Assembly: GCA_047495785.1 (NCBI GenBank)
Contig: JBLDXI010000015.1
Span: forward strand, 3,410,001 to 3,474,000
Direction: 5' to 3'
Source: Lepidodermella squamata
Taxonomy: Eukaryota > Animalia > Gastrotricha
Length of the DNA stretch: 64,000 nucleotides
A program made the translations under genes and the position numbers. This document shows, one piece after another, positions 192 through 60,585 of this stretch (within the stretch, counting starts at the first letter, position 1; every line of letters begins with the position of its first letter). The notes beneath the pieces were generated by a model, which did no database searches, had not been told where the DNA came from, and saw only the letters and a program-made list of their open reading frames with translations.

Positions 192-3100
192 ATGAAAAAA
201 ACCAGTAGGTATCGAAGAAAACTTGCTATGAATATTAGCGCCAAACTCATTGCGTGGACACGCATAAGTGAAGCCGAATTTTCAGGCTATAAATTTGTCG
301 CATCACCACCGGACCAAATCGAATTGAAAATAACAGCGGAATGGTCGTCGCGTGTTCTGCGTTATGCCATCGAAATTTCGCCTTCTTTTGGAAATCCTCG
401 CACATTTTATTTGAAGTTCGAGCCGCCTAATGGCTGCTTTGACGTCAATCAAAATGGTATTATCAGCGTTGAGCGGTGCTATCTGTTGCCGGATGAACCT
501 TCAAGGCAAGCGATGATAACTTCGTTGGTAATGAAGTTTCCCAACTTCGAAGACGCGCTGGCTACGTTACGCAGAGTGAAAGGATTCATAGGCTACCGAT
601 TTGAACAGCAGGACTGCTTTAAGAGACAGTTCACTGAAAACATAATTAACCGCCGTTTACATGATATCCAAGCTGATGATCATGAGAAAAATGCCGATTA
701 CTACAAAAGAGTATCATGGCATCACTACAAACCCCCGGCGATTTCTTTCGGCCTAATCAAGCCGTTCTTAATCCGAGACCACATGTTAAATTTCGATAGA
801 TTGCGCGAGGGAATAGGAAACCTGTATTGGGACCAGCTTATCGGACAGCCTAGGTCCTAGGTGTACCCGTCACCAGTCTACAACCGACCAACACGACGAT
901 GTAAGACTGATGGCTCGCTTCTCTTCATGGAACGATGCAGACATTTTGCGGGCTTGTCTTAGTGAAAACCCAATAAATGTCGCAACTGTTGCCCATCTGC
1001 TTGAATATCCTTTCAATGCACCTCACCCTTATAGTCAAGAGGGAATCGGCTTCAACGCAAGTGAAACTCTGGTAAAAGTATTGCGATGGAACCATTCGTC
1101 AAATGATACGTATAATCTACTGAAGAGGCTGCAAGAATTTCGCAAGGAGATGTTAAAGTTGCACCCGACTCGTCTTGTAACCCCTGGAGCAGCTCATCAG
1201 ATCAATTCAGGCCCTGTAGAAGCGGCGTTCTGCTTTGAAATACAAGTCCATGTTGGCAGTGTAGTTCAGATCCGTCCGTTCATTTCACTAATTCCGACCG
1301 AACTATTCTACGCTGACGGCCGCGTTTCAGTGTTCGAGACGCAGTGTGCAAGCTCGAGAGATGATAACGAAGAAATTTACCGAGTTTTTGCCGCATTCAC
1401 CGATGGTATGATTCACCGCATGGATGGTATCGGAGCAGCTCGCTGGATGAGAATGAGTAGGCTCGATAATACGTTATTACCCCAGACTAGGGTAAAATGG
1501 GTCCTAGCCACCTTTAGCCAACTACCGGTTAAAGGCGAAGATATGTTAAAGGGCGATGAAGAAATGAAATTTTGGCATTATTTCCTCGAAATCGGCAAGA
1601 CTCCAGAAAGCTATCTGTATGACATGGTAAGACTTTCACTTCAGCATTATTCAATATAGTTCCGATATGTAGGGATCAGCAACCGTCATAGCAACTTCTG
1701 ATGACGCAGTTTCATTCGAAATAATCAAACCCGAACGAGGAAAATCTCAAATTAAGATTAAGGACTTCAAAGTACACGCTTTTCCGGATTCGTCCATGAT
1801 ATTAGAATTCTCAAACGGAGAAGTCAGATTCTCTCTATTTTTGGGACATGATGATACTTCACGCCTGTATCTGTCCCGCACGCCGCAGCAAGAGCTTGTG
1901 CTCGTTGCTGAAGTTTGGCCACGCGGGCAAAAAAGCAAACCGCCTCATGCCCGATTTCATTTCCGATCACCAACAGCAGCTTTGCAGTTTTACCGAAAAG
2001 TGAAAGCATATATCGGGCGCCAAATCCCAAATACTATGGAATATTGCTTCCCTGATCTAGCAGCTCACTTTAAGAAAAATTTCAAAATTAAGCGGCGGCT
2101 CGATATCGAAGATGAAGCGAACAACTCAGCGGCTGTTGCGTATTTCAGCCGGCCAATTGAAACGATTGATTGGAGGCAGTTGGATCCGAATGACGATTTT
2201 CATGCCGTTCATGCGCCCTCGCAAAGTTGGGATATTTTCGGAAAGAGTTACAACCCGTTGACGGATTATGCGGAGAGAGAATTTCTGGACCATTACATGG
2301 CTGACAGAAGATGTGATTTGATGCATCATTTTATTAATCACGAAGAGTTGAATATATTTCCCTACCGCACTCTTTCCTTTACTGAGCATGACTACTCCGA
2401 GGACATTCGGGCTTTCTCAGCTCACAATGATAAAGATATATTGTTCGCGATGCAAAAGAATCGATTGGGTCAGCTGGACGAAATCGCACCAATGTTCGAA
2501 GCTCCATTCGACAAACCTCATCCTATTTTAAGTGATGATATGAAGTTTATTTACCTCAACCCCGGGCCCCGAGCTACGACGTTCAAGGTAATGAAGCGTG
2601 GTAATAATAATTATACTGAAGCACTTCTGGCCAGGATAACAACTCACGTTTTAGGACATCCAGTAGCTTTTTTCACAATAGCTCGCAAAGACGTGGAAAA
2701 ACATTACTGTTTTACGCAAAAGGTTCTCCGCCTCAAAGTTTGGGCAATGTTATGTCCTTGGAAAGCTTTCGCTAGTGACGGCGTTATTTCTATCTTCGAA
2801 ACATCGGCTTTTGATCTGTCTGCACCTAGAGATACCGCAGAAAAACGTGCTACTGTTATATTAACCAGCTCTAAATCAACTCCAGCATTATTCGCCAGTA
2901 GTACAGTTAACTACGCGCAGTTTACCTCTCGATGGGCTCGAGTTATATTTGACGATGACGAGACCTCAGTTACATGGGGCCTATTGATTTCGCACGCCGA
3001 TCGCTATGTAACTATTGTCAATCACGTTGTCGAACATCCCATTTATGACTTCGGAATCGAAATCTATCGGGAATTTAGCAAGGATGAAGAGTTTGCCCTT

Positions 3101-4291
3101 GCGACTTACAACAGCGTGAAACTGCCACAAGTTAAAGACAGTTGGAACAAGAATGCCGAATATTCGATTGAGATGCTGCTAAGAAGCAAAGAATCGTTGT
3201 CTGGGAAGATTCGTTGTACCTCAATCACCTACTGCTTTGAACTGGACCTTCCTTCTCACTGCAGAATCTGGCAGATTAATGAGCAGTTGCATTTCGGACC
3301 AGTCCTTTCAGGTGCTAGCATTTTGCAAAGTATAACAGTGGTATTTCCTACTGATATCCAAGCTAGGGCATTCTATCGGCGAGTGAAAGGATACATTGGA
3401 TATCGTGTTAGAACTGGTAGAAATCAACAGTGGCCTAACGCTTGGAAACGCAGGCTTAAGCCTGAGCCAAATAGTCATAATGGTTACTATGAAAGATCTA
3501 ATCAAACTGTTGCCGCAATCGGCACCGAAGAGCAAAGATTCATCATGGATTTTGATGACGAAATGAATACTTTCGCGTTTCAAAGCTATGAAGATATTTA
3601 TTGGTTGCTTGATGATTGGAGGGCTGTCGAGTACTACTCGCGCGCAAATGACCAGGATATTCTGCTATCGATCAGAAATGGCCTAATTGTCCCTGACAAT
3701 CCAGATGGCATGCACAATTCTAGCCCTCTGTTCGAATATCCATTCAACGCACCGCATCCGCTTCGATTTGGAAGGGCGATGGCTAGCCTCCACAGGACAG
3801 CGTGGACGTCCTTTCCATCCGATCACCACGAAAACGGGAAGATTAAATCTCATTTCGAAACAATTTCCGCACGGCCGCATGAAAAATCCCTGATTTGGTG
3901 TTTCTTAGGACCGGCATTTTTAGACGGTTCAAGCAACGCTGTACATGCGATTCCTTGTCTGGCTTATTTTCCATCCGCTGTAACCGATCGGCAGCCAGTA
4001 ATGGCTTTTCTCTCCGAGGCGTGGATTTTCTTGTTCAATGGCAGGGAACCTGTGAGAAAAATGTGCCTTTTCGTCATGACGGAATGCGAGACTGATTTGC
4101 GATGGTTTAGAATGATCGAGGTTTCAAACACCCAGACCGCTGATGGCAACCCAGTCTTGCACCCTATCGGAGGTGATTTGGCGGTTGTTCATTGGGGTGT
4201 TTTCGTTTTGTATAGAAAATACGAACCCCGAAAAAAACGAACAAAGCGCTCGTCTTCTCCTATATTATCAATTAATTCATTTCATCGATAA
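192..4291 (+). pseudogene. Orphan ~1,350-aa protein with three tandem ~450-aa repeats; frameshifted by a 7-bp duplication (pseudogene or null allele)
   Basis: ORFs 144-860, 910-1659 and 1796-4291 join into one frame after removing one CCTAGGT copy (849-855/856-862) and splicing a GT-AG intron 1627-1672. Motifs recur three times: RRVKGFIGYR/YRKVKAYIGR/RRVKGYIGYR, WNDADIL/HNDKDIL/ANDQDIL, EYPFNAPHP/EAPFDKPHP/EYPFNAPHP. Start ATG (192 or 228) uncertain. Confidence 0.7.
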
Positions 4292-4415
4292 AAACGCAAA
4301 AATAAAATGTGCAAATATACGAATTCCTCACGCACCCCTGCGGGATGTTGCGGGATAGCTGCGGAATGAGTGCGGGAGGTTAGTCTCGTGATTTTTACTA
4401 ATTGATCCTCCTTAT

Positions 4416-4434
4416 CCTAACCCTAACCCTAACC
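4416..4434. repeat. Short interstitial telomere-type repeat, about 3 x CCCTAA
   Basis: cctaaccctaaccctaacc read directly; preceded by a TGCGG(G)A micro-tandem at 4339-4377. Confidence 0.8.
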
Positions 4435-4515
4435 TTTGGAGTAGGTTTTGTGTCGCTTTCGGATTTATATTCCCGGCTTCGTAGCAGACAGTACAGTCCT
4501 TCAGACGATGAGAAA

Positions 4516-5582
4516 ATGAGATTCATTGAAAGTCTGAATGCAGTTACTCCCCTGTCTCCCTCACTCCAAGAGTTCATCCAGCGACATAAATCGCTTTATC
4601 GTCAGCTTGCAGGATGTGAAACATGGGACAAAGTTACTATCGACAACATTGTCAAACAAGCGCTTTCCATGATATCGACGTCGACTAATGAAAGTATCTA
4701 TAAGACTGTTGGTTACAGTTTTTATAAACTTCTTTCTGTCTCTCTGAAGCCAGGCTGCTCAGTCGGAATTTACAAAGTCACGAATCAGTATCAACCGCTA
4801 TCTGTTACCATTGATGGGATTAGGATGCCTCCTGCCTCCTAGAACATATTGTGCTAAAGTTGGTCCTTTGGAGAGTCTACAGAAGGAAAGAGAAGTTGCG
4901 AAAGTTGTGACAGGAAACTATGTCATGCCTATTTTGGACTCATTTGAGTTGGAAGGTTATGATGGAATGAAACGATTGGCAATTATCGCACCGGAAGAAA
5001 GAGCGGCAATTTTGATCTCTATCCGCCTGATACTTGCTCTATTTATAGGCTCTATTCTGGTTCAATGGCAGAAATTCTTTACAAAAATGAAGCTCCCGAA
5101 CAGATAGCTGCTATGTTGTTAAGCGACATGTCGGCTATTTATTCATTTTCGTCGAAAGGATACGGTCATCGCGACATCAAGCTGGAGAATCTTTTTAAAC
5201 TTGATAGCCATGAATGTGTTCTTGGAGATTTTGGCTCAGCTGTGCAGCTCAATCCTTCCGGTGAACACAAACTACGGCTAATATCAGCATGAACCAAAAG
5301 GGAATTACCATTGCTTACGATGTAACTTGTTTAGCTTCGGCAGTCGGCTACATGGTACTTAGACGACGACTCAAATTTGGTGAAAAGAGTCATTTGCTGC
5401 GGGAGGTTCAGGACTTTGTAAAGTATCCCGTCACTTTGGAAATGCTAAAGAGTCTCATCATAGATGAAACTATCGCAGACAGTACTGAATTGTGGAACAA
5501 CTGGAACAAACTTTCTTTGATTGCAGAACACCACATACTCAGTCTCTTCACTCGTTTTCCTAATTTGAAACCTGTATCATAG
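4516..5582 (+). pseudogene. Intronless Ser/Thr protein kinase pseudogene
   Basis: Kinase motifs spread over four ORFs in shifting frames: YCAKVG...E, HRDIKLEN, LGDFGSA, YDVTCL; no convincing introns at the frame changes. Confidence 0.7.
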
Positions 5583-5880: not shown

Positions 5881-8001
5881 TCAACTGTTAAAACTGGTTG
5901 TCGACAAATCGATGGGTTCCGGCCGAAGTGCCGTAAAAAGGATAGCGGGCGTTAAACAAATGGCAGTCAAATACAGGAACATGTTAAATCGCTCCACAAC
6001 CTCAGCCATATATATCCACTGTTCTTTGATGTCATCTAGGTCCATCAGCATTTGAGCGGCTCGGTGGTTAGCCTCGTCTCTAGCTGACGTCTCCTCTGAT
6101 GTCTCGTAATCAATCGAGGTAAAAGTCGCCTCTGGAATGATGCTAGCAACCAAATGGTGGTGATTATTAATGCCTCGTGTTGTTCTTTCGTCTGCAAGTG
6201 ACTTTCTTCGCGGATTTTTGATAGCTCGTTTTGCCGCGTCCAAAATTGAATTGCTGTAGAATTTCGCCAGTTTAGCGCTGTTGTCATCGCCGCTGTCTTC
6301 CGATGATTTATGTTTATGAGACGCGAGGAAGGCTGATCGTGAATCGACGCAAAGAGCCCGGCCTATCATATGGGAACATCGATTTATCCACCTAGGTGGC
6401 GGTGTCTAAAATTTAAGAAAAGTACGGTACAAATCGAGTTTTTTCGGCGGTTTTTTACTTGAAATTCAGCCTTTCGAAGGATCAAGAAAACAACTCCTTC
6501 ACCCAGAAGAGCGATAATGCCAATATAGGCCATTTGCAGGTTGATGTAGAGCGTTAACAAAGGAACCTCCATGCTACTTTTCGGGAGATCTTCAATGACC
6601 ATTGACTAAAAATTACAGATTTCGGGATATTCAAACATTTCAACTCGAATCAAATTGGAAAAACCTGGAAAACTGAATAAGCGAGGAGGCAAGTAAATGA
6701 TATATGGACTTTGATAACTTCCGAAATCTGAAAAAAACCAAATTTACTATTATTAAGTTGGACCAAAAGTAACTGACCGGTAATACGAAAGTAACAATTT
6801 CCACGAATGCGATGATCAAACTTGGGATGATGACGTTGACGTAGTAAAACAAGCTTTTCCTACGTAGATGCAGAGTGAAAATTATCTAAAACAAATTGAA
6901 AAATGGCATGAAATTTGAACAAAATTTGGCTGATCCTTACGCTGTCATATTCGTATTCATCACCGTAATTGATTTGCCGCCGAATCGAGCGGTTCGCAAC
7001 TAGGTCCCATTGTTTATTTTCGGTCCAATAGTGCTCCTGCTTTGTGAAAGGATTTTTTGTGGTGAGATGTAGCCTTTGCGAGATATTAGGGTAATTCCAA
7101 CTCTCGACCCTTATGTGGCACACCTGAAAATACAAATAAAATTTGCATGTTGCTAACGATTTTTTTTATCGAATAAACTTGTTCGTCGAAAGGAAACATC
7201 GTCAAATCGAGGTCACACTTGACTGCTATTGCGCTGGTCGGATCCATGCTAACCGCTCCATTACTTCGAACGAAGGCTTTGATACCAGGAGACAAAAATA
7301 CCGTGTAGATGTTCCCCCTTAATCAAAGCTGCAATTGCAAAAATCGTCACTGCAAACGAGTGTGCATTCTTACGGAGACTATAAAAAAATTAATTTTATA
7401 TCTTCGATTTCGAATTTTTCAAAATTCAACTAACATTAATTATCGAAAGGTCAGGTTTCCAAACTTTCTCCACATTGACAACTATAAATTGGGAGCAGTT
7501 CAACGGATACGTGTTGTTCCATATCAGCGAATAGTCATGCCAATACTATGAATCCTTTTTAGTGTTAAGGAAAAATTGAAAATTGAAAAAATTCAACAAA
7601 CCGCGCTGAAATAGCCCTCCAAAATCAATGTGCTCTGACGTTCTATCTGAAATAGATAATATACTTAAGAAATTAATTCAAATTTATTAGGGCGGATAGT
7701 TTAGAAATGTAAGTTGGAAACTTGCGAAATCTGCTATGCCGAATAAGGTAAGGCTGAGTTCTACGTCGACCGGACTTTGGGCATCTGGGATCGGGCGGCT
7801 GACGTTGCTGTAATTTCGAAATACTGCCTCCATCACAACTTCCTCAGCTATTGCTAATGGAACACAATACTGCTTTTAAAAACTGTTTCAGCGGTTTTAA
7901 GGCTCAATGTTACTTTCACGAGAACAACTATTGGGATTTTGTCCTGCCAACGGTTTCGCAATCACCAGCTCTAATAGAATAATGAAGACGCAGGCTCTCA
8001 T
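5881..8001 (-). CDS. Cys-loop ligand-gated ion channel subunit 1 (nAChR/5-HT3-like, non-alpha), multi-exon
   Basis: Signal peptide MRACVFIILLELVIA, WKPDL, Cys-loop CDLDLTMFPFDEQVC, M1 YYVNVIIPS, M2 KVHISFTCLLAYSVF, M4 QWIYMAEVVERFNMFLY; no vicinal CC in loop C. Confidence 0.9.
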
Positions 8002-25076: not shown

Positions 25077-26927
25077 TTACATGCCATCGTAGTTAGGGCC
25101 CTCGCCTCCTTGAGGCGTCACCCAGTTAATGTTTTGGCTCGGATCTTTGATATCACAAGTCTTGCAATGGATACAATTTTGAGCGTTGATTTGCAAGCGC
25201 TTGCCGCCTTCTTCGGCATCGACGTATTCATAAACGCCAGCCGGGCAGAATCGCTGCTCCGGCCCGTCATAGATCTTCAAATTTCGATTGACAGGGATCG
25301 CGTCGTTTTTCAACGTGAGATGCGGTGGTTGATCTTCTTCGTGATTAGTTCCAGTGAGCGATACTGAGGTCAAGAGGTCGAAACTGACTTTGCCATCAGG
25401 CTTTGGGTATTCGATTGGCTTGTATTCAGCTGCAGGCTTCAAACGAGAAGCATCAGAGCCTCCGTGTGAAAGAGTCCACGGCTCCTTGCTCTTCAACAAC
25501 CAAGTGAACAGACCAGTATATGCCATAGTCCCCAGCACACCTAGACGAGTTGAGTGAAATGCGGGTCTGATGTTGCGAACTGAATTCAGTTCTTCGTAAA
25601 TCCAGCTTTTACGGAAGCTCTCCTCGTAGGAAGCCATGTCGACTGGAGCTTTTGATTCGGCGTTCTTTGTCAATGCGTTGAACGCATCTTCGGCGGCCAT
25701 CATACCGGATTTCATCGCGGTATGCGTGCCTTTGATTTTCGGTACGTTCAAAAACCCAGCCCCGCAACCAACGAGGCAACCGCCTGGGAAGGTCAGCTTC
25801 GGCAAAGACTGAATTCCACCTTCGTTCAGAGCCCTAGCACCGTAAGAAATACGCTTGCTGTTTTTGAAGAAAGGCTCCATTGCTGGGTGGTGCTTGAATC
25901 GTTGAAATTCACGGTAGGGGTTGAGGTAAGGGTTTTCGTAATCTAAGCCAATCGCGAACCCAACTGAGATTAATGGAGTCTGACCGTCTTCTCCGCCCAA
26001 GAAGTGGTACATGAAGGAGCCTCCGTAAGTTTTGCGATCGAGTGGCCAACCAACCGAGTGAAGGATACGGCCGGGTTTGTGAACTTCTTTAGGGACTTCC
26101 CACAACTCCTTCAGGCCAATAGCGTATGTTTGAGGCTCACTATTCTTGCGAAGATCAAACTTGTTAATCATCATTTTGGTCAGATGACCATGGCAACCCT
26201 CTGCGAAAATTGTGCATCGAGCGCGAAGCTCGAGACCGCGTTGAAACGAAGATTTTGGCGATCCGTCCTTAGCAATGCCGACATCGTGAGTGGCAATACC
26301 CTGCACAGCTCCGTCCTTATCGTACAAAACTTCTGATGCAGCAGTGCCAGGAAATATTTCGACGCCCATTTCTTCGGCTTGTTGCCCAAGCCATTTGACA
26401 AAATGGCCCAATCGAACAATGTAATTCCCATGGTTATTCATTGGCAGACTCTTAAACCAATGAACAGGCACTGCGATTTTAGACTTTTTAGTCAAGTACC
26501 AAAAATCATCGGATGTCACGGGATTATTCAACGGTGCGCCTTTTTCTTTCCAATCCGGAAACAGTTCATCAAGAGCTCTCGGCTCAATGCAAGCACCGGA
26601 TAATGTATGGGCTCCAATATCAGAAGCTTTTTCAACGACAATGACCCTCAAGTCAGGCTTGTTGTGCTCTTTGCAAAGCTGTTTGAAGCGACAAGCAGCT
26701 GAAAGACCAGCCGGACCTCCGCCAACAATGACAACATCGGCTTCTTCGACCGCTCGTTCCATATTTATGTCTTTCCAGCGAGGATCTGTCTCACGAGGCA
26801 CAATTGTATAATGCGTTGTAATACGACGTGGCTCAGCAGCGGCACGATAAAGATTGGACGTTGACAATGAGCGATAATGCGCACATTGCAAACAACTTCG
26901 AGCGATAGACCTTCCAATCAATGCCAT
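25077..26927 (-). CDS. ETFDH: Electron transfer flavoprotein-ubiquinone oxidoreductase, intronless
   Basis: FAD motif [24 protein letters not shown], 4Fe-4S region RFCPAGVYE...[14 protein letters not shown]; [11 protein letters not shown] resembles a mitochondrial presequence. Confidence 0.97.
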
Positions 26928-27043
26928 AGTTCCAATATTAACAATTCTTGCCCTATTGAAACAGAACAGTCCGAATAAAATTACTGTTGCAACAAAACCT
27001 CCAAAACCACAGTGAACTCGGCCATATAAGGGCTGAAGGCCCA

Positions 27044-27652
27044 ATGACTAAGGACCCTTTCCGTAGGCTAAACAATCATGAACGTATTAGCTTCGCCACG
27101 ATGGGACCCGCCATTCCTATTCATAGGTCAATGGTCAATGAATTAAATCATGGAGATGATGAGTCAAGAAATGACATTCGGCCACTTTCAGAAGGTTTCA
27201 GAAGACCCGCAACCAACATGCAGATTTCGCAGGCCTTTAGGACTGTGAGCGATATGCCTCAAACACACAAAACCATCAACCATCGAGCTCGAGTCTCATT
27301 CGAGAAGAGAACACCTTTGAACTTTGAACCGACCCGCTCAAAATCTACCCATCTGAAGTTGGTACCCTCCAAACCTAAAGAAATACATTTTCCAGATTTA
27401 TCATAGAATTATACAAATGCATTAGTTAGATTAATTTCTGATAAATTACAATATGATGAAAAATTTTACACGTGAAATGCAAAAGGTGTCAATAAAGACA
27501 CCCCCATATCTATTTTTTCTGAACCAAAAGACAAGTCCGACAAATCACGTTCAAGTTCGAAGGTTGGAAGCCTGGATGAAGTTTTCAGCCCACCTCTGGT
27601 TCCGCAGCCCCTCTCTAGCCGTTTGTTGTCAAATCCGGAATGCAGAACTTAG
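27044..27652 (+). CDS. Possible small unknown gene head-to-head with ETFDH
   Basis: Open frame from ATG 27044 ([17 protein letters not shown]) and a possible GT-AG intron 27362-27395; no recognisable domain, exon structure unresolved. Confidence 0.25.
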
Positions 27653-54652: not shown

Positions 54653-54800
54653 CTACAAAAATATCGATTGACCATCATTATAAGGATTATAAGGAGTAAA
54701 AGCACATTATTTTCAGGTATAATATAACATCAAAAGAAGCGCAGTTTTGCAGAGTTTTTGCAAATATTTTTCCCACCTGACATTTATAACTCGCGAAAAT

Positions 54801-55483
54801 ATGCAGCCGGACGACTACGACTACTTGTTTAAAATCATTTTGATCGGCGATTCTGGGGTTGGGAAGTCTAACCTTTTGTCGAGATTCACTCGCAACGAAT
54901 TTAATCTCGAAAGCAAAACAACGATTGGCGTCGAGTTTGCTGTGCGCACCCTGCAGGTCGAGGGGAAAAACGTCAAAGCTCAGATCTGGGACACCGCCGG
55001 GCAAGAGCGCTATCGTGCCATCACAAATGCCTACTATCGAAATGCAGTAGGAGCCCTCCTGCTGTACGATATCGCTAAGGCCAACTCGCTGCAGAAATGT
55101 GAAAACTGGCTTCGAGAACTTCGCACCTTCTCGAATTTAATCTCGAAAGCAAAACAACGATTGGCGTCGAGTTTGCTGTGCGCACCCTGCAGGTCGAGGG
55201 GAAAAACGTCAAAGCTCAGATCTGGGACACCGCCGGGCAAGAGCGCTATCGTGCCATCACAAATGCCTACTATCGAAATGCAGTAGGAGCCCTCCTGCTG
55301 TACGATATCGCTAAGGCCAACTCGCTGCAGAAATGTGAAAACTGGCTTCGAGAACTTCGCACCTTCGCAGATCCTAACATAGAGGTTATGCTTGTTGGAA
55401 ACAAGTCGGACTTGAAGCACCTCCGCTCTGTCCCCGTGGAGGCCGGGCAAAGATTTGCAAGTAAATTTGCCCGATCTCAATAG
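54801..55483 (+). pseudogene. Truncated, internally duplicated Rab11 copy 1
   Basis: Exon 1 with a frameshifting 236-bp duplication (junction 55130/55131); exons 2-3 absent. Confidence 0.85.
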
Positions 55484-56561
55484 ATATTTGAGATTTTTAG
55501 TATCATTATTTCTTAAACTATGCGCTGATTTATTTGCAACAAAAATTGCGTAAAAAAACAACATTGGTGTTCTAGTAAATTATTGCACGTACCAACCTGA
55601 TTTTCTGAGGCTCAAATCTCTAATAACACATGTGAGACGGTGTGTACAGAGAGATGAAAAAAATAATTGATACACAAACATACAAATTTATGCTACCCAG
55701 TTTGATCCAACGCTAATTATTATAATCATTATGGTGTGCCGATTGACATACTGAATTCACGCTAGACGACTACATCGTAAAAGTTGCTCCGTGGTTTTTG
55801 CAACCTGTAATAATGACTCTCGTATTAAGCAGGGATATATATAATTGATTTTTTGGCTGTGGAAATTTGAAACGAACTTGAACATAACATTATATTTAGG
55901 TATCACTATATTCTTCTTTGCACCAAAAGAGGCGCTGTTATAATTGGAATTTATATACTAGCTGATTATATTCTTAAAAATGTCTTTATTATAGAATAAA
56001 AATCGGATGAACTTTCTGTTTGCGTGTGCGCGATGCAGTTCGTCGAATGCTATATATATATCAATCGCTATATATTAACGGAAAAATTGTAATAAAAATA
56101 CCGCGATTTTCTCTCTTATTGTTGTTCAACAATGAGGTATGCATTACATACATATATGCGACGGAAAAATACAAATCGTAATAAAACGAAAGTTGGAAAT
56201 AAGCACCGGGTAAATACTTGTAAAAAAATCATATTTTGTCGAGGTGTTTTTTCCGCTCAGCAGGATCGCATGGCTGCATTTGCGGGCGATAAGGCGCGAC
56301 ACTGGGTGGATGCATAAAAAAGAGCGCGACTCGTGTGATTCATCACGCGCGCTTACCTGGCGTGAATAAGTGCTGTGTGGCCATGAGTCATCGCCTCATA
56401 TTGGCATTACTAATGAATGGCTGGCGCTTTTCTATACCTATGCGCCACACTTGCGAGTAAAAGCACATTATTTTCAGGTATAATATAACATCAAAAGAAG
56501 CGCAGTTTTGCAGAGTTTTTGCAAATATTTTTCCCACCTGACATTTATAACTCGCGAAAAT

Positions 56562-57244
56562 ATGCAGCCGGACGACTACGACTACTTGTTTAAAATCATT
56601 TTGATCGGCGATTCTGGGGTTGGGAAGTCTAACCTTTTGTCGAGATTCACTCGCAACGAATTTAATCTCGAAAGCAAAACAACGATTGGCGTCGAGTTTG
56701 CTGTGCGCACCCTGCAGGTCGAGGGGAAAAACGTCAAAGCTCAGATCTGGGACACCGCCGGGCAAGAGCGCTATCGTGCCATCACAAATGCCTACTATCG
56801 AAATGCAGTAGGAGCCCTCCTGCTGTACGATATCGCTAAGGCCAACTCGCTGCAGAAATGTGAAAACTGGCTTCGAGAACTTCGCACCTTCTCGAATTTA
56901 ATCTCGAAAGCAAAACAACGATTGGCGTCGAGTTTGCTGTGCGCACCCTGCAGGTCGAGGGGAAAAACGTCAAAGCTCAGATCTGGGACACCGCCGGGCA
57001 AGAGCGCTATCGTGCCATCACAAATGCCTACTATCGAAATGCAGTAGGAGCCCTCCTGCTGTACGATATCGCTAAGGCCAACTCGCTGCAGAAATGTGAA
57101 AACTGGCTTCGAGAACTTCGCACCTTCGCAGATCCTAACATAGAGGTTATGCTTGTTGGAAACAAGTCGGACTTGAAGCACCTCCGCTCTGTCCCCGTGG
57201 AGGCCGGGCAAAGATTTGCAAGTAAATTTGCCCGATCTCAATAG
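56562..57244 (+). pseudogene. Truncated, internally duplicated Rab11 copy 2
   Basis: Same structure as copy 1, offset 1761 bp. Confidence 0.85.
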
Positions 57245-58322
57245 ATATTTGAGATTTTTAGTATCATTATTTCTTAAACTATGCGCTGATTTATTTGCAA
57301 CAAAAATTGCGTAAAAAAACAACATTGGTGTTCTAGTAAATTATTGCACGTACCAACCTGATTTTCTGAGGCTCAAATCTCTAATAACACATGTGAGACG
57401 GTGTGTACAGAGAGATGAAAAAAATAATTGATACACAAACATACAAATTTATGCTACCCAGTTTGATCCAACGCTAATTATTATAATCATTATGGTGTGC
57501 CGATTGACATACTGAATTCACGCTAGACGACTACATCGTAAAAGTTGCTCCGTGGTTTTTGCAACCTGTAATAATGACTCTCGTATTAAGCAGGGATATA
57601 TATAATTGATTTTTTGGCTGTGGAAATTTGAAACGAACTTGAACATAACATTATATTTAGGTATCACTATATTCTTCTTTGCACCAAAAGAGGCGCTGTT
57701 ATAATTGGAATTTATATACTAGCTGATTATATTCTTAAAAATGTCTTTATTATAGAATAAAAATCGGATGAACTTTCTGTTTGCGTGTGCGCGATGCAGT
57801 TCGTCGAATGCTATATATATATCAATCGCTATATATTAACGGAAAAATTGTAATAAAAATACCGCGATTTTCTCTCTTATTGTTGTTCAACAATGAGGTA
57901 TGCATTACATACATATATGCGACGGAAAAATACAAATCGTAATAAAACGAAAGTTGGAAATAAGCACCGGGTAAATACTTGTAAAAAAATCATATTTTGT
58001 CGAGGTGTTTTTTCCGCTCAGCAGGATCGCATGGCTGCATTTGCGGGCGATAAGGCGCGACACTGGGTGGATGCATAAAAAAGAGCGCGACTCGTGTGAT
58101 TCATCACGCGCGCTTACCTGGCGTGAATAAGTGCTGTGTGGCCATGAGTCATCGCCTCATATTGGCATTACTAATGAATGGCTGGCGCTTTTCTATACCT
58201 ATGCGCCACACTTGCGAGTAAAAGCACATTATTTTCAGGTATAATATAACATCAAAAGAAGCGCAGTTTTGCAGAGTTTTTGCAAATATTTTTCCCACCT
58301 GACATTTATAACTCGCGAAAAT

Positions 58323-58769
58323 ATGCAGCCGGACGACTACGACTACTTGTTTAAAATCATTTTGATCGGCGATTCTGGGGTTGGGAAGTCTAACCTTTTG
58401 TCGAGATTCACTCGCAACGAATTTAATCTCGAAAGCAAAACAACGATTGGCGTCGAGTTTGCTGTGCGCACCCTGCAGGTCGAGGGGAAAAACGTCAAAG
58501 CTCAGATCTGGGACACCGCCGGGCAAGAGCGCTATCGTGCCATCACAAATGCCTACTATCGAAATGCAGTAGGAGCCCTCCTGCTGTACGATATCGCTAA
58601 GGCCAACTCGCTGCAGAAATGTGAAAACTGGCTTCGAGAACTTCGCACCTTCGCAGATCCTAACATAGAGGTTATGCTTGTTGGAAACAAGTCGGACTTG
58701 AAGCACCTCCGCTCTGTCCCCGTGGAGGCCGGGCAAAGATTTGCAAGTAAATTTGCCCGATCTCAATAG
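58323..58769 (+). pseudogene. Truncated Rab11 copy 3 (exon 1 only)
   Basis: Intact exon 1 reading into intron 1 (FASKFARSQ*); lacks G5 and the C-terminal CC. Confidence 0.85.
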
Positions 58770-59847
58770 ATATTTGAGATTTTTAGTATCATTATTTCTT
58801 AAACTATGCGCTGATTTATTTGCAACAAAAATTGCGTAAAAAAACAACATTGGTGTTCTAGTAAATTATTGCACGTACCAACCTGATTTTCTGAGGCTCA
58901 AATCTCTAATAACACATGTGAGACGGTGTGTACAGAGAGATGAAAAAAATAATTGATACACAAACATACAAATTTATGCTACCCAGTTTGATCCAACGCT
59001 AATTATTATAATCATTATGGTGTGCCGATTGACATACTGAATTCACGCTAGACGACTACATCGTAAAAGTTGCTCCGTGGTTTTTGCAACCTGTAATAAT
59101 GACTCTCGTATTAAGCAGGGATATATATAATTGATTTTTTGGCTGTGGAAATTTGAAACGAACTTGAACATAACATTATATTTAGGTATCACTATATTCT
59201 TCTTTGCACCAAAAGAGGCGCTGTTATAATTGGAATTTATATACTAGCTGATTATATTCTTAAAAATGTCTTTATTATAGAATAAAAATCGGATGAACTT
59301 TCTGTTTGCGTGTGCGCGATGCAGTTCGTCGAATGCTATATATATATCAATCGCTATATATTAACGGAAAAATTGTAATAAAAATACCGCGATTTTCTCT
59401 CTTATTGTTGTTCAACAATGAGGTATGCATTACATACATATATGCGACGGAAAAATACAAATCGTAATAAAACGAAAGTTGGAAATAAGCACCGGGTAAA
59501 TACTTGTAAAAAAATCATATTTTGTCGAGGTGTTTTTTCCGCTCAGCAGGATCGCATGGCTGCATTTGCGGGCGATAAGGCGCGACACTGGGTGGATGCA
59601 TAAAAAAGAGCGCGACTCGTGTGATTCATCACGCGCGCTTACCTGGCGTGAATAAGTGCTGTGTGGCCATGAGTCATCGCCTCATATTGGCATTACTAAT
59701 GAATGGCTGGCGCTTTTCTATACCTATGCGCCACACTTGCGAGTAAAAGCACATTATTTTCAGGTATAATATAACATCAAAAGAAGCGCAGTTTTGCAGA
59801 GTTTTTGCAAATATTTTTCCCACCTGACATTTATAACTCGCGAAAAT

Positions 59848-60585
59848 ATGCAGCCGGACGACTACGACTACTTGTTTAAAATCATTTTGATCGGCGATTC
59901 TGGGGTTGGGAAGTCTAACCTTTTGTCGAGATTCACTCGCAACGAATTTAATCTCGAAAGCAAAACAACGATTGGCGTCGAGTTTGCTGTGCGCACCCTG
60001 CAGGTCGAGGGGAAAAACGTCAAAGCTCAGATCTGGGACACCGCCGGGCAAGAGCGCTATCGTGCCATCACAAATGCCTACTATCGAAATGCAGTAGGAG
60101 CCCTCCTGCTGTACGATATCGCTAAGGCCAACTCGCTGCAGAAATGTGAAAACTGGCTTCGAGAACTTCGCACCTTCGCAGATCCTAACATAGAGGTTAT
60201 GCTTGTTGGAAACAAGTCGGACTTGAAGCACCTCCGCTCTGTCCCCGTGGAGGCCGGGCAAAGATTTGCAAGTAAATTTGCCCGATCTCAATAGATATTT
60301 GAGATTTTTAGTATCATTATTTTTTAAGGTGAAAACGGTCTTTCATTCATTGAAACTTCCGCATTGGACGGCACGAACGTCGAAAAAGCTTTCAGAAATC
60401 TTATAGCAGGTATGATATCGATTTATTAGCTATTCGTTGTTGTTATGTTAAACCCATTCTCAGATATTTTCCCGAAAGTTGCAAGGCGTTCCGGGGAAGA
60501 AGACGTGGCGAAATACGAAGTGGTAGCTTCGATTAACCCGGCAACTCCCATGACCAAAAAGCCGAGTACGATCAATTGCTGTTGA
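59848..60585 (+). CDS. RAB11: Rab11-family GTPase, intact, 3 exons
   Basis: [66 protein letters not shown], ends INCC*. Confidence 0.95.

Follow-up and report, generated by a model that had tools for sequence, protein, structure and literature searches.

A predicted three-module gene of the gastrotrich Lepidodermella squamata that joins a PH-like domain to a domain without recognisable relatives

Domains of the EVH1/WH1, Dcp1 and Ran-binding (RanBD) type, proteins with tandem or double PH-like domains (Rtt106, Pob3 and Spt16-M) and short Cys/His zinc motifs such as PF25219 are the described systems that come closest to the gene examined here. It lies at positions 192-4291 on the + strand of a 64,000-nucleotide stretch of Lepidodermella squamata DNA (the window; G000:C15:3410001-3474000, from a 121.2-Mb eukaryotic assembly of 151 contigs). 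The genome of this animal is the first of its phylum and was obtained from multiple-displacement-amplified (MDA) DNA and HiFi reads (PMC11660948). We consider it likely that a single gene with two exons and about 1,348 codons occupies 192-4291 and encodes three tandem, very diverged modules of about 440 residues, and that the multi-module genes of its family arose through old internal duplication. In the mechanism we propose, each module would begin with a PH-like beta-sandwich of EVH1/Dcp1/RanBD shape, closed by the F.R..K.YIG helix, and would continue through a partly disordered linker into a helical-plus-beta domain of about 250 residues with no recognisable relatives. The likeness to EVH1/WH1, Dcp1 and Ran-binding domains is one of shape, but no PH-like Pfam family (PF00169, PF00568, PF00638, PF06058 and others) matched at E <= 1 in more than 20 modules, and here the PH-like domain is always fused to the same ~250-residue domain, with the pair repeated as a unit. 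Rtt106, Pob3 and Spt16-M scored far below significance and show no sequence relation; in contrast to them, the present family has a helical Cys/His segment between the beta domains.

That the modules are repeats of one unit is indicated by motifs that recur in the same order. R.VK..IG occurs at 567, 1991 and 3374, ND.DIL at 931, 2426 and 3647, E.PF..PHP at 1003, 2498 and 3734, DG.xSxFET at 1315 and 2777, and V.W at 1492, 2969 and 4184; each was found where an earlier reading of the letters, made by a model with no database searches (the sequence-only reading), had placed it. Exons and frames were searched and folded separately. A BLASTP comparison among the pieces of the three open reading frames (ORFs; E1 to E3 below) gave E-values of 3e-10 and 4e-6 for the matches of E2 to each half of E3 and of 6e-5 for E1 with E3, so that the proposed self-alignment of the three repeats is significant. 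We also used an independent hidden Markov model (HMM) of 14 modules, none of them from the window (10 from paralogs in the same genome and 4 from metagenome proteins). Among the 758 ORFs of the window it matched only four stretches: residues 78-444 of E3 (module 2, i-E 5e-31), residues 520-851 of E3 (module 3, i-E 1e-34), the frame-1 ORF starting at nucleotide 856 (i-E 2e-26, profile positions 202-432) and residues 122-198 of E1 (i-E 8e-9, profile positions 93-171). There are, therefore, exactly three colinear modules, which match one profile significantly, lie on one strand and can be joined in frame; a profile that holds no window sequence thus supports the earlier proposal of a single gene with three repeats. 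Positions 3-189 of the family profile align to 222-758 of the window. The features of the locus are as follows.

192-857, + strand: ORF E1, frame 0, from the ORF list
910-1626, + strand: ORF E2, frame 1, a frame that is open from 817
1673-4288, + strand: ORF E3, frame 2, 872 codons without a stop
192-855, + strand: exon 1, first part, frame 0 from the ATG at 192; N-terminal half of module 1
849-862, + strand: 7-bp tandem duplication, CCTAGGT CCTAGGT, read from the sequence
856-1626, + strand: exon 1, second part, frame 1; C-terminal half of module 1 and inter-module linker
1627-1672, + strand: predicted 46-nt intron, GTAAGA...TGTAG, in the linker between modules 1 and 2
1673-2989, + strand: module 2 (HMM i-E 5e-31; AF2 model; PH-like fold matches)
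2990-4291, + strand: module 3 (HMM i-E 1e-34; column table), with a basic tail and the stop codon TAA at 4289-4291
4301-4306, + strand: AATAAA, candidate polyadenylation-type signal 10 nt past the stop codon, read from the sequence

In the N-terminal half of module 1 the PH-like domain ends in the helix LRRVKGFIG (567-593), and the same half contributes a conserved Cys (CF, at about 618-623), while its linker shows the motifs RRL and YY.R. The C-terminal half carries CTRH......HDD (862-900), NDADIL (931), EYPFNAPHP (1003), DGRVSVFET (1315), RWMR and VKWVL (1492). The PH-like domain of module 2 occupies approximately its first 115 codons, and the module contains YRKVKAYIG (1991), NDKDIL (2426), EAPFDKPHP (2498), DGVISIFET (2777) and VTWGLL (2969). 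Module 3 contains YRRVKGYIG (3374), NDQDIL (3647), EYPFNAPHP (3734) and VVHWGV (4184), lacks the Cys/His set and has a basic tail. Basic stretches stand at both ends of the protein (KKTSRYRRKL and PRKKRTKR), and no signal peptide or membrane segment was evident in the window translations that were read.

The two exons would be joined by removal of the GT..AG intron at 1627-1672, which connects frame 1 to frame 2 exactly. Frame 2 opens precisely at the acceptor, from 1673, and the junction follows the V.W motif of module 1, with the PH-like domain of module 2 starting within a few residues of the exon start in the AF2 model. On the same contig, the equivalent linker of a two-module paralog is likewise interrupted by a GT..AG intron, here of 68 nt. 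The intron, which the sequence-only reading had already placed here, is thus a prediction well supported by anatomy: its frame joining, its linker position and its likeness to the paralog intron fit, and the splicing itself stays at the level of a prediction.

Module 1 is interrupted by a change of frame. Since frame 1 does not open before 817 and a stop codon at 858-860 closes frame 0, the shift must lie between 817 and 860. At this place the assembled sequence (CCTAGGTCCTAGGT) holds a perfect tandem duplication of CCTAGGT, at 849-855 and 856-862, which moves the reading from frame 0 to frame 1; by our own arithmetic, about 0.003 perfect 7-bp tandem repeats are expected by chance in a given 44-nt interval. 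From nucleotide 856, frame 1 reads P-R-C-T-R-H-Q-S-T-T-D-Q-H-D-D, which aligns with the C-x2-H-x6-HD that precedes ND.DIL in the family, and the stretch is, therefore, coding. With a single copy of the repeat the reading frame would span about 1,348 codons. The repair of 7 bp that had been postulated from the letters alone corresponds to this duplication. A 52-nt GT-AG intron at 854-905, the best of 47 candidates for bridging ORF 1 and ORF 2, was rejected; its removal would take away the conserved C-x2-H-x6-HD (862-900). The duplication could be a recent inactivating mutation, a variant of one allele, or an amplification or assembly error. As assembled, the sequence does carry a genuine break of the frame, and this copy may therefore be a recent pseudogene.

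The standard ORF list gives three ORFs at 192-4291, each in its own frame and each with its own ATG, and one could suppose that they are three separate genes or chance open frames. We regard this as very improbable, because the end of ORF 1 and the start of ORF 2 fall in the middle of a module, ORF 3 read from its own ATG (1796) would lose the first 41 residues of the predicted PH-like domain, and relatives hold two modules in a single ORF. A more serious question is whether the gene is intact in the animal, the duplication having arisen during whole-genome amplification, HiFi consensus calling or assembly, or lying on one allele only, so that the full ~1,348-residue protein is made. The rest of the gene is open, with 872 codons in exon 2 free of stops, all three modules keep all of the family-invariant residues, and the source assembly was probably the one made from MDA DNA (PMC11660948), in which an amplification or assembly error at the 7-bp site is possible. 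The assembly holds no second haplotype copy of the region with which the site could be compared. Known MDA artefacts, however, are chimeras and not short tandem duplications, and HiFi consensus errors are mostly homopolymer indels, which likewise counts against an artefact. A clean 7+7 bp duplication is typical of replication slippage in vivo. In the family tree, branches are longest for the modules of the window, at 2.0-2.7 changes per site where the median is 1.69. An intact gene deserves to be kept in view as a reading of some weight, which we nevertheless do not adopt.

We now return to the three-module gene and the architecture of its repeat. An AF2 model of module 2, made from a 15-row alignment (pLDDT 70, pTM 0.75), has beta strands at residues 4-97 followed by a helix at 100-111. 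This helix is the FYRKVKAYIG segment from which a PH/EVH1-like ending of strand and helix had been suggested, and the model agrees with that suggestion: it is an antiparallel beta-sandwich with a C-terminal alpha-helix capping one end, as in the PH-like superfold. The model of the C-terminal half of module 1 (856-1626; pLDDT 72, pTM 0.72) consists of four helices and then seven strands, for which neither Foldseek against the PDB nor a viral structure library gave a convincing match. ESM Atlas scores of 0.79 and 0.86 were below the bars of that tool. Searches of the second domain against Pfam, PDB sequences, Foldseek and VIA matched no catalytic fold or family, and a lead towards the calponin-homology (CH) domain found no match in sequence or fold. 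The second half of the unit had been called an unrecognised domain, and it has kept that status. Its invariant motifs are N(D).DI., E.PF..PH, WC, P, T(E), RW.R and V.W.

For column counts, 26 module sequences were aligned to the family HMM. R116, G123, N231, P259, P263, P358 and R412 are invariant or nearly so, and E257, H264, T395, R409, W410 and W434 are the next most conserved. The counts are 21 of 22 modules for C208, 19 of 21 for H211, 19 of 25 for H218, 20 of 25 for C334 and 14 of 24 for C133. The three residues C208, H211 and H218 are kept in approximately 20 modules and lost as a set in five, namely module 3 of the window, PB, L014, L017 and module 2 of P0001 (a metagenome protein described below). 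Each of these five is the last module of a multi-module protein, and all of them lack C133 as well; their monophyly was evaluated at p-AU 0.18. Joint presence and joint loss are what a shared metal site predicts, and we infer that Cys-x2-His-x6-His(Asp), with one or two further Cys, probably binds zinc and thereby pins the linker to the second domain. Either C334 or C133 could supply the fourth ligand. The spacing C-x2-H-x6-H(D), the extra conserved Cys and the joint loss recall short Cys/His zinc motifs. The match of L015 to PF25219 (Znf_Tenuivirus), however, scored 18.8 bits (E 0.0019), below the gathering cut-off of 27 bits, and was found in this one module of those scanned. Nothing useful was found in the literature on the tenuivirus zinc finger.

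The gene had been described as a hidden single orphan, and this part of the sequence-only reading did not hold, because the gene is one of at least 13 family genes of its own genome, and three metagenome clusters are members as well. Profile searches found 23 family matches in the genome, on contigs C1, C15 and C54, in genes that hold between one and three modules. The window gene is the richest in modules among the members examined, and its three repeats lie on long branches. Most of the 23 matches are in long open frames, and six contain one or two stops. Every sampled pair of modules is at most 34% identical. Copies that have diverged to this extent and yet remain open must be old, which argues for long-term selection on the family. 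At this level of identity synonymous sites are saturated, and dN/dS among paralogs is not meaningful. One copy of a different kind is found on C55 (L026, G000:C55:1578000-1587999; 257-679 and 6323-6421), which is 87-88% identical in DNA to positions 144-664 only of the window. It corresponds to the 5' end plus the PH-like portion of module 1. An insert of 5.6 kb without Pfam-recognisable ORFs divides it in two, and with its frame-breaking indels it looks like a dead partial duplicate.

A search of 1.84 billion representative proteins with the family profile gave three matches, all unnamed and all from ENA metagenome assemblies. P0001 (797 aa, E 7e-78) has two modules in one uninterrupted ORF; P0002 (440 aa) is a further family member; and P0003 (593 aa) is a member with a single module and a hydrophobic C-terminal segment. 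At the C-terminus of P0003 (the last ~60 residues), low-complexity sequence forms a long tail, and after it comes a hydrophobic stretch (MLMMIGVAFTLMLMF) that is possibly a tail anchor; other members examined have no such end. P0001 is colinear with the two-module paralog, whose first module is at C15:2945596-2946879, with 31-32% identity module by module. In the tree, PA pairs with module 1 of P0001 (support 82) and PB with its module 2 (support 97), and the multi-module layout, therefore, predates that species split. The existence of this colinear counterpart supports the proposal that the module is old and has been retained. The suggestion that the family is lineage-specific fared less clearly: no described family was found, but the argument is weak, since relatives are expected to be missing when, as is probably the case here, a genome is the first sequenced of its phylum. 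No match resulted from a word-index protein search with the 872-aa exon 2, and scans of JGI metagenomes found no relatives. Pfam (hmmscan of all window pieces, 13 paralog modules and P0001-P0003) gave noise only, and PDB sequence profiles gave one chance MHC row at E 0.037 and then nothing. In the Pfam, PDB sequence and Foldseek searches, no full-length match to a characterised family appeared, as the sequence-only reading had expected.

Several points weigh against the proposed gene and its modules. The gene model and the splice are predicted from DNA, and the broken frame may prevent production of the full protein. The AF2 models were computed from 15-17 sequences and reach pLDDT 70-72; the zinc site and the way in which the domains pack are predictions. 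Comparison of the window copy with the C55 fragment gives a dN/dS of 0.61 from 45 differences, which is consistent with constraint but is not significantly below 1. Finally, the invariant E257, H264, R409, R412 and T395 could equally constitute an active site.

What might such proteins do? In the mechanism we propose, they would be soluble, non-enzymatic, intracellular (possibly nuclear) multivalent adaptors, in which several PH-like modules bind peptide or protein partners; a non-enzymatic adaptor function of this kind is suggested by the invariant set, which is kept in every module, degenerate ones included, has Pro, Gly, Trp and Arg as prominent members, and looks more structural or interface-forming than catalytic. 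Alternatively, the C-terminal domain might be a metal-dependent enzyme (e.g., a hydrolase or nuclease) that uses the Cys/His/Asp set with E257 and H264 and is targeted by the PH-like domain. The family does conserve the polar residues C208, H211, H218, D219, N231, D232, E257, H264, T395, R409 and R412, and in multi-module proteins the Cys/His set is all that the last module has lost, a pattern often seen in degenerate enzyme copies. We think that this is unlikely, given that the searches named above matched no catalytic fold or family, that E257, H264, R412 and T395 are kept even in modules without the Cys/His set, and that Pro, Gly and Trp fill many of the columns with the highest conservation. 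That the family descends from a virus or transposon, as a domesticated or endogenous gene, is scarcely credible; the idea rests on noise-level hits, and the viral structure library gave nothing. The copies are few, old and each different, the members have introns and sit among ordinary animal genes (BEACH/neurobeachin, ETF-QO, RPE, importin-11-like and Cys-loop receptor genes are the neighbours here), and no transposase, reverse transcriptase or capsid partner was seen.

A bolder version of the adaptor proposal, which we offer tentatively and think rather doubtful, is that the second half of the module has a hitherto unseen fold and a novel kind of Cys/His zinc site and is permanently linked to an EVH1-like PH domain, and that this combination is an invention at the level of the phylum, shared by gastrotrichs and their nearest unsampled relatives, in which first modules with the zinc site and last modules without it have different jobs. 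If this is true, then one module might, for example, bind a partner and the other regulate. The layout in which the last module lacks Cys/His is shared with a distant relative from an environmental sample. A clear module with invariant motifs and a probable zinc site, described by no database, would provide a ready profile for annotating gastrotrich and other meiofaunal genomes and a compact domain without detectable relatives for structural biologists. The analysis also shows that a reading of raw DNA without tools can call a PH-like fold and a frameshift correctly. The wider impact is limited: the copy may be broken, the proposed function is inferred, and a phylum's first sequenced genome can be expected to contain orphan families.

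The remaining observations concern other parts of the window. A same-strand run of ORFs at 4402-5582 lies immediately downstream of the gene. A telomere-type repeat, (CCTAAC)3, at 4416-4433, about 125 nt past the stop codon, lies inside the first ORF (4402-4842) of this next gene region. The ORF at 5065-5289 matches the catalytic loop region of Pkinase (Pfam, E 3.5e-6; HRDIKLEN), and the run is probably a divergent multi-exon kinase gene. The ETF-ubiquinone oxidoreductase (ETF-QO) is one uninterrupted ORF of 655 codons at 25080-27044 on the - strand. It is at most 70% identical to named animal proteins (Lingula) and 76% identical to an unnamed ENA metagenome protein; a related, unsampled animal is probably present in public metagenomes. 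In the regions 54747-57325 and 58149-60294, one pair of ORFs, 179 aa on the + strand and 176 aa on the - strand, is present twice about 1.76 kb apart, and a second pair of similar ORFs has a spacing of about 1.5 kb. They look like tandem duplicated units with ORFs overlapping on both strands.

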